Source of the DNA: Sphaerodactylus townsendi | Taxonomy: Eukaryota | NCBI RefSeq assembly: GCF_021028975.2 | Contig: NC_059439.1 | Span: forward strand, 39,316,068 to 39,372,000 | DNA: 55,933 bases | Direction of reading: 5' to 3' | Shown: positions 45,572 through 46,416 of the stretch, one piece after another | How the letters are laid out: the number at the start of each line of letters is the position of its first letter | How positions within the stretch are numbered: the stretch's first letter is position 1 | The notes under the pieces: generated by a model | Database searches by the model: none | What the model was told of the DNA's origin: nothing | The model's input: only the letters and a program-made list of their open reading frames with translations | Position numbers and translations under genes: made by a program

Positions 45572-46416
45572 TCAGCCGCCAAGTCGGATGCTCTGAATCA
45601 GCTGGAAGATGGCTGGGAAAAGAACAGAAGGGAAATCTCAGGTGTCAGAAGGGAGAAGCGGCAGCTGCACGGCCCACCCCCGGGTGCGGTCAAGCGGTCA
45701 AGGGGCCGTGAGAGGCGGATCTCCCCTCTCCCCACAGGGCAGCTGATCTCTGCAGTGGGGGGGATGGGTTGCGTCTCCTGGAAAGCCCGAGCCCCCTTCC
45801 CTGGGGGTCAGCAACCTTGCAAAGCGGACCCTCTTCCATTCTGACCCGTCCTGAGCTTCCTACCTGATCCACAGACCACAAAGATGAAAAGGGCCAAGAG
45901 CCAGGGCCCGACAGGGGCTTTTTCCTCCTGGGGTGTCTGGGGAGAAGCAGAGTAGGAGAGAACTAAGAGGGCGACCGCCTTCCTCTGACATGGCTTCCCT
46001 CCCCCACCCCACCCCCACGCGCAGGCAGAAGGAACAGCGAAGCCCCCCTCCCACCTGGCCCTGATCCCTGCATTCTTGGGGCGGGGGCTGCCATGCATCC
46101 AGGCTCCCCGACCCCCGACAAGGTAGGTGTTGGAGGCAAAAGGTGTGGGGAGGGGAGGGGTCTGCCGTCCCCCGGAGGTCCCCCACCCACATTCTACGCC
46201 GGCCCGATCCTGCACAGCTTCCGGACAGCCTGGGGGAGGGGGGGCTGTCTATCGCCACGCAGGGCGGCCGCATTTGCAAAGGAAGACCCTCTGACCCCCC
46301 CCCCCCACTCTCCCTGAAGGCCCCTCCCCTACCGGGGCCCGGTGGAGGCCCCCCCTCTGCGTGATGCTCTTGCTGTGCCGCTCGTTGGCCACCTTCATGC
46401 GCTGCACCCCCGACAT
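45572..46416 (-). CDS. Stress-associated ER protein (SERP/RAMP4) family microprotein, 65 aa, 3 exons; paralog distinct from SERP1/SERP2
   Basis: Exons 46416-46333 (cgccATG...CCG|gtaggg), 45936-45864 (ccccag|ACA...TCAG|gtagg) and 45612-45572 (ttcccag|CC...TGA); 198 nt. Product [65 protein letters not shown] aligns end to end with RAMP4/SERP ([13 protein letters not shown]...[31 protein letters not shown]). Confidence 0.93.

Follow-up and report, generated by a model that had tools for sequence, protein, structure and literature searches.

Introduction

Recent work placed RAMP4 at the lateral gate of Sec61 in the majority of secretory translocons (Lewis et al. 2024, PMC11186639; structure 8RJB). 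Residues 3-28 of RAMP4/SERP1 form a ribosome hook on 28S helices 47, 57 and 59 together with eL19, eL22 and eL31, and a hydrogen bond between K13 and S28 stabilises the hook (PMC11186639). The RAMP4 helix has a kink at a conserved glycine and inserts into the lateral gate, where it widens the pore and completes the lumenal funnel (PMC11186639).

Here, we analysed a stretch of 55,933 nucleotides from the gecko Sphaerodactylus townsendi (contig NC_059439.1, positions 39,316,068 to 39,372,000), referred to as the window; all gecko positions below are window positions. A first reading of its letters, the original prediction, had proposed a hidden 65-residue gene of the SERP/RAMP4 family as a candidate third vertebrate paralog. 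To our knowledge, that study and the translocon field at large consider only SERP1 and SERP2, mammals having just those two. Our data indicate that the gecko gene very probably represents, in S. townsendi, an ancient third gene of the SERP/RAMP4 family, with a RAMP4-like role at the translocon by homology.

Results

A three-exon RAMP4 gene on the minus strand

The gene lies on the minus strand and has three coding exons. Exon 1 (46416-46333; 84 nt, 28 codons, phase 0) begins with the ATG at 46416 and is directly followed by GT. Intron 1 (45937-46332; 396 nt) and intron 2 (45613-45863; 251 nt, phase 1) are both GT..AG introns. Exon 2 (45936-45864; 73 nt) is preceded by AG and followed by GT, and exon 3 (45612-45572; 41 nt including the TGA at 45574-45572) is preceded by AG. 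The codon divided between exon 2 (g) and exon 3 (cc) encodes alanine. The minus-strand reading and the exon translations thus agree, piece by piece, with the exons, canonical splice sites and 65-residue peptide first proposed. Judging by translation and family likeness, exon 1 encodes the N-terminal region of the ribosome-binding type, exon 2 the linker plus the first half of that protein's transmembrane segment, as far as the conserved Gly-Ser, and exon 3 the lumenal half of the segment and a short tail. The start had been credited with a good Kozak context; the context is gccATGt, with G at -3 and T instead of G at +4.

The exon translations were searched singly, and work that needed the whole protein relied on database sequences, chiefly the RefSeq protein XP_048372952.1. 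In Pfam, exon 2 covers positions 29-51 of the RAMP4 profile (PF06624) with 42.8 bits (cut-off 24; E 5e-11), and exon 1 covers positions 4-21 with E 5e-4. The layout, as read from the sequence, is that of the tail-anchored proteins of the family: 65 residues, one hydrophobic stretch (W40-I61) and few residues beyond it. G51 and the flanking VVC-G-SAIF residues are invariant in 62/62 aligned family sequences.

The word hidden fits only a prokaryote-style ORF track, in which, as the original prediction noted, nothing but fragments of the gene appear and the exons are buried in longer spurious ORFs (46249-46644 and 45808-46215). RefSeq models the gene in this same assembly as XP_048372952.1, 'SERP2-like', and also models it in dozens of other species. 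All three exon translations are present in XP_048372952.1, at residues 1-28, 29-52 and 54-65, and the protein likewise carries PF06624. Its locus (GCA_021028975.2, CM037628.2) matches the window without a single mismatch over 20,362 nt.

Splicing, leader and promoter region

The splicing evidence comes from one public run, X4, which behaves like RNA but is not on record as such. Contigs of this run join 45612 to 45864 and 45936 to 46333, exactly the two junctions predicted and proposed for an RNA check. The skipped stretches, 45613-45863 and 45937-46332, are bounded by CT..AC on the plus strand, hence by GT..AG when read along the gene. Depth in X4 is 450-3648 over the exons and 17-35 over the introns, a 20- to 100-fold excess, and the contig that skips the 251-nt intron 2 has a depth of 2020. 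Three other runs of the same organism yield flat, DNA-like contigs that pass straight across the introns. None of them contains the joined form, a point against a genomic retrocopy.

The transcribed 5' leader covers at least 46417-46664 on the minus strand, where an X4 contig joins 45908-45936 to 46333-46664 and mapping stops at a repeat. This repeat is a perfect (GAAT)12.8 microsatellite at 46672-46722, which coincides with the 5' end of the leader as mapped or lies immediately upstream of it. On the other side of the gene, the part of the 3' UTR seen here spans 45300-45571 (minus strand) and belongs to an 831-nt X4 contig of depth 764 that continues below 45300. On the gene strand, the 3' region has ATTAAA at 45305 and at 45177 and no AATAAA. 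The CpG island of the original prediction is present at 46250-46999 (GC 0.68-0.70, CpG observed/expected 0.79-0.81), over the promoter, leader and exon 1, and GC reaches 0.70 in 46001-47000. Motifs of the ERSE, ERSE-II and UPRE types were absent between 44300 and 47600, so stress induction of the SERP1 kind is unsupported.

The leader contains a single upstream ATG, at 46535. It opens a reading frame of 46 codons (46395-46535, minus strand) that is out of frame with the main ATG and overlaps it, ending with a TGA inside the Met7-Lys8 codons. Upstream of the gene in Anolis (-161) and in Chelonoidis (-116, -107), a candidate overlapping uORF in the same frame also ends at +22, and the alligator has overlapping upstream ATGs in the other frame. 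The overlapping frame may exert translational control.

Three samples of the organism differ at 7 SNPs (45564, 45844, 45954, 45990, 46060, 46234 and 46614) and seven small indels, all in introns or UTRs. The 198 coding bases carry 0 of these variants, with ~2 expected by chance, a difference that is not significant.

A third clade of SERP/RAMP4 proteins

The open frame around exon 1 retrieved eleven RAMP4-family proteins from reptiles, a salamander and a fish, all with the same unusual N-terminus. A profile built from eight such proteins recovered 1060 family members, and its top scorers all show the signature MS[AG][VI]QRMK..ANE[RK]HSK[STA]ITQRG. We placed the gecko protein in a maximum-likelihood tree of 55 sequences over 66 columns, in which many forks are unresolved and the deep order is only moderately supported. 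The gecko protein falls in a group of 22 sequences with support 99/97, which we call clade 3. SERP1 forms a group of its own (97/95) that leaves the gecko protein outside, and SERP1, SERP2 and a ray/skate gene form a larger group (93/92) that leaves out clade 3. Branching within clade 3 follows the species tree, ray-finned fishes separating from tetrapods as expected. The stem branches are long, 0.39 for clade 3 and 0.29 for its tetrapod part.

Single characters fit the tree. Across 62 aligned sequences, the residues of clade 3 and of SERP1/2 do not overlap at positions 2, 4, 7, 9 and 17. Clade 3 has the state of invertebrates and cyclostomes at positions 7 and 9, where SERP1 and SERP2 share a derived Ile and Met, and is itself derived at positions 2, 4 and 17. 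The gecko protein carries the clade signature MS[AG][VI]QRMK..ANE[RK]HSK[STA], and its gene has the three-exon structure of the clade and, as in paddlefish and alligator, lies next to SRRT.

Two other assignments were tried and rejected. Orthology to SERP1 conflicts with the 97/95 clade and with the residues at the signature positions. Orthology to SERP2 conflicts with a place outside SERP1 + SERP2 (93/92) and with the lack of the SERP2 linker; in addition, species with a true SERP2 also have a clade 3 gene.

Clade 3 is carried by squamates, turtles, the alligator, a caecilian, a salamander, the coelacanth, the bichir, sturgeon/paddlefish and many teleosts. The suggestion that the gene was kept in reptiles is thus right for reptiles and too narrow, since ray-finned fishes, the coelacanth, the caecilian and the salamander have it too. 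The coelacanth and the milkfish have all three types (SERP1, SERP2 and clade 3), and at least SERP1 and clade 3 occur together in zebrafish, Pleurodeles and Thamnophis. The cyclostomes sampled have one undifferentiated SERP type. Among annotated proteins, both in the profile list and among cluster members, no clade 3 member from a mammal, bird or frog was found. The range of carriers suggests that clade 3 is roughly as old as the bony vertebrates, and the gene appears to have been lost in mammals, birds and frogs.

Rays, skates and the catshark have a SERP type with a SERP1/2-like N-terminus, an 'APVAPW' linker and an 'MGA' tail, located near an LRR+CH (LRCH-type) gene. Joining the ray/skate gene to clade 3 lowers the log-likelihood by 2.8 units, and the AU test does not reject this union (p-AU 0.40). 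An unambiguous clade 3 member was not found in cartilaginous fishes.

The RefSeq names of clade 3 orthologues vary by species among SERP1, SERP1-like, SERP2, SERP2-like and SRRT isoform. The alligator gene bears both 'SERP1 isoform X3' and 'SERP2 isoform X4', and the zebrafish entry reads 'uncharacterized protein LOC405879'. In Anolis carolinensis, the 191-residue protein XP_062840633.1 is filed under SRRT as 'serrate RNA effector molecule homolog isoform X4'. It is a clade 3 SERP with an N-terminal extension, and the filing probably stems from the tight tandem arrangement or from read-through transcripts.

Purifying selection on the third gene

Eight loci, ranging from teleosts to the gecko, share an exon structure of 84, 73-76 and 41 nt and have their GT-AG introns at identical codon positions; they are those of the gecko, Anolis, alligator, tortoise, turbot and three cyprinids. 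We estimated dN/dS from Nei-Gojobori counts summed exon by exon, leaving out the split codon. Among reptiles, dN/dS is 0.03-0.08 at dS 0.5-1.3; between reptiles and teleosts, it is 0.14-0.24 at dS 0.9-1.6. The strong purifying selection sought by the original prediction is therefore present. The exon 1 protein of the gecko is 100% identical to those of lacertids, Rhineura and the side-necked turtle Emydura, which shows that the divergent N-terminus is itself tightly conserved.

Tiny exons in GC-rich DNA crowded with spurious ORFs could come from a chance assembly of ORFs, a pseudogene or a retrocopy. Such an artefact is refuted by the Pfam matches, the conserved introns, the spliced contigs, the low dN/dS and the syntenic orthologues across bony vertebrates described below, and we give it practically no credence. 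The three-exon gene is real, on evidence far beyond chance.

The names 'SERP2-like' and 'SERP1-like' in RefSeq would suit a fast-evolving orthologue of SERP2 or SERP1. Within its clade, however, the gene evolves slowly, with exon 1 the same in gecko and turtle and dN/dS as low as given above. The 99/97 clade, the five positions without overlap and the co-occurrence with SERP1 and SERP2 in other species also speak against such an orthologue, as do the SRRT and EPHB4 neighbours kept from paddlefish to reptiles. We consider it highly improbable. The gene thus stands as the separate, intact paralog originally proposed: it has its own clade outside both SERP1 and SERP2, so that the nesting within either of them named as a refutation did not appear, it is spliced and under purifying selection, and in other species it coexists with the two known genes.

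Genomic neighbourhood and origin

The minus-strand order in the window is a P5-type ATPase, the SERP/RAMP4 gene and SRRT. Downstream, the 5' part of SRRT occupies 31930-41934 (minus strand), with the CDS starting at ~41934 according to a RefSeq-derived gene call. Pfam SERRATE_Ars2_N matches at 37550-37966 and 31930-32583, and the gene called at the gecko RefSeq locus contains SERRATE_Ars2_N and ARS2. Upstream, the 3' part of the ATPase occupies 50303-55933 (minus strand), with the CDS ending at ~50303 and called genes that contain P5-ATPase, E1-E2_ATPase and Cation_ATPase. The P5 ATPase models have 1244-1273 residues, and this gene ends 3.9 kb upstream of the RAMP4 gene in both the gecko and Anolis sagrei, where the ATPase-RAMP4 pair is as in the gecko. 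ATPase exons conserved with Anolis lie at 50306-50515 and 51743-52033. Ten long minus-strand ORFs of the ATPase region gave nothing in Pfam, being spurious and GC-rich, and a PDB search with one conserved ATPase exon gave nothing. Within 10 kb of the RAMP4 gene, no P5 ATPase was found in the alligator, tortoise or paddlefish.

Beyond SRRT, on the plus strand of the window, 11340-12377 is a C-terminal exon of the SLC12 family (Pfam SLC12, E 9e-11). An ORF at 14508-15467 (plus strand), complete in a single exon, is of the UFSP type (Pfam Peptidase_C78, E 5.5e-53), and one with a galactosyltransferase domain lies at 17347-18042 (plus strand). Human SRRT, EPHB4, SLC12A9 and UFSP1 lie together at 7q22.1, and with SRRT and the SLC12- and UFSP-type genes the window is a human-7q22.1-like block.

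The SRRT-adjacent synteny that the original prediction had proposed as a check is shared by gecko, paddlefish and alligator, and teleosts differ. In the paddlefish, SRRT follows the RAMP4 gene 4 kb on, in tandem as in the gecko. In the alligator, the RAMP4 gene lies together with EPHB4 and SRRT; the EPHB4 call rests on the ligand-binding exon, with E 9e-48 against 8e-27 for EPHB2 and EPHB3. An Eph receptor overlaps the RAMP4 locus in the bichir. As SRRT and EPHB4 are shared by paddlefish and alligator, this neighbourhood is as old as the bony vertebrates. The clade 3 gene of turbot and of three cyprinids follows a natriuretic-peptide gene (Pfam ANP) and lacks the SRRT neighbourhood; in turbot, enolase and CAMTA genes flank it as well.

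The gene families of 7q22.1 are partly those of 3q, namely ACHE/BCHE, PLOD3/PLOD2, GNB2/GNB4 and EPHB4/EPHB1-3. Human TSC22D4 is at 7q22.1, TSC22D2 flanks SERP1 and TSC22D1 flanks SERP2. Our reading is that clade 3 may have arisen in the vertebrate genome duplications. Alternatively, the third paralog may come from a small-scale duplication before the divergence of bony vertebrates and may not be a 2R ohnolog. The teleost location among ANP, enolase and CAMTA genes, unlike the SRRT/EPHB4 location, would agree with this, and so would the lack of an unambiguous cartilaginous-fish member, the ray/skate gene having an N-terminus of the SERP1/2 type and a union with clade 3 at p-AU 0.40. The block with SRRT, EPHB4, SLC12- and UFSP-type genes, in turn, speaks against a small-scale event, as does the one undifferentiated type in the sampled cyclostomes. 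We regard a small-scale duplication as possible and somewhat unlikely.

A conserved putative gate helix and a divergent putative ribosome hook

A column-by-column comparison bears out the earlier remark that the transmembrane half is almost invariant and the N-terminus divergent. Throughout clade 3, the whole segment from VGPW to SIR is invariant, including the kink glycine. The hook keeps the core QR..ANE.HSK.ITQRG, and K4 and N17 are replaced clade-wide. Most tetrapod members have R13/P28 in place of K13/S28, within a GGLHRAP loop. The gecko protein differs from SERP1 at 12 of the first 28 residues.

By homology with RAMP4, the gecko protein is likely a subunit of the Sec61/ribosome complex that is tail-anchored in the ER membrane. 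Its N-terminal ~28 residues would hook the large ribosomal subunit near the exit tunnel as in RAMP4/SERP1, and its kinked C-terminal helix would sit in the Sec61 lateral gate, keeping the pore wide and completing the lumenal funnel. Since the helix and its glycine are invariant in clade 3, gate binding is the safest part of this model that we infer. The changes in the loop and the replacement of K4/N17 and K13/S28 suggest that ribosome binding may differ, and altered ribosome contacts, raised as a possibility in the original prediction, are possibly a property of the clade, a fair reading of the substitutions.

Going further, clade 3 might be a functionally shifted relative of RAMP4, keeping the Sec61 gate while its hook binds the ribosome differently, or binds another partner or another state of the ribosome. 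The 12/28 N-terminal differences from SERP1, the change from K13-S28 to R13/P28 and the replaced K4 and N17 would fit such a shift, as would the long stem branches (0.39 and 0.29) with very tight constraint afterwards. However, the core QR..ANE.HSK.ITQRG of the hook helix is kept, and invertebrate RAMP4s vary at several of the positions as well. To us, such a shift seems unlikely. The boldest form of the idea would make clade 3 a distinct variant of the 'fourth subunit' of Sec61 with a remodelled ribosome hook. Most bony vertebrates other than mammals would then have two classes of ribosome-translocon complex, the second possibly under translational control through the overlapping upstream ORF and lost independently in mammals, birds and frogs. 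We judge this to be quite doubtful. A RAMP4-like subunit, as described above, is the reading we prefer.

Discussion

In this study, we examined a RAMP4-family gene in a gecko and placed it in a third clade beside SERP1 and SERP2. Clade 3 is a so far unnamed branch of a known family, and the gecko gene is already annotated. A search outside subscription journals and orthology databases found no published description of the clade; orthology databases probably separate it as a group already. The inconsistent names of its orthologues indicate that, for fishes and reptiles, SERP1 and SERP2 orthology cannot be transferred reliably by automated means. The gene itself is ordinary, and its relevance lies mainly in translocon biology and in the correction of these names. 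With an invariant helix of the gate-binding type and a differently wired hook, clade 3 amounts to a natural experiment on the importance of individual RAMP4 contacts, and zebrafish, as a carrier of the gene, would permit a direct test.

Among the described systems, mammalian SERP1/RAMP4 shares with the gecko protein the Pfam family, nearly the length (66 residues against 65 in the gecko) and a tail anchor. Both have the segment VGPW...FVVCGSAIFQ.IQSIR with the kink glycine, and both have the core QR..ANE.HSK.ITQRG. They differ in the loop, where residues 23-28 of SERP1 read NVAKTS and tetrapod clade 3 has GGLHRAP. In addition, clade 3 adjoins SRRT/EPHB4 and forms a clade separate from that of SERP1. 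SERP2/RAMP4-2 shares with the gecko protein the length of 65 residues and the Pro before VGPW, and most members of SERP2 and clade 3 have Val at the Ile position of SERP1. The SERP2 linker 'TLRPQEEKYP', however, is absent from the gecko protein. The single-copy RAMP4 of invertebrates and cyclostomes and yeast Ysy6 share Met7 and Val/Ile9 with clade 3, which are probably ancestral states. Clade 3 differs from these proteins by its own derived Ser2, Val/Ile4 and Ser/Thr/Ala17 and by another C-terminal tail.
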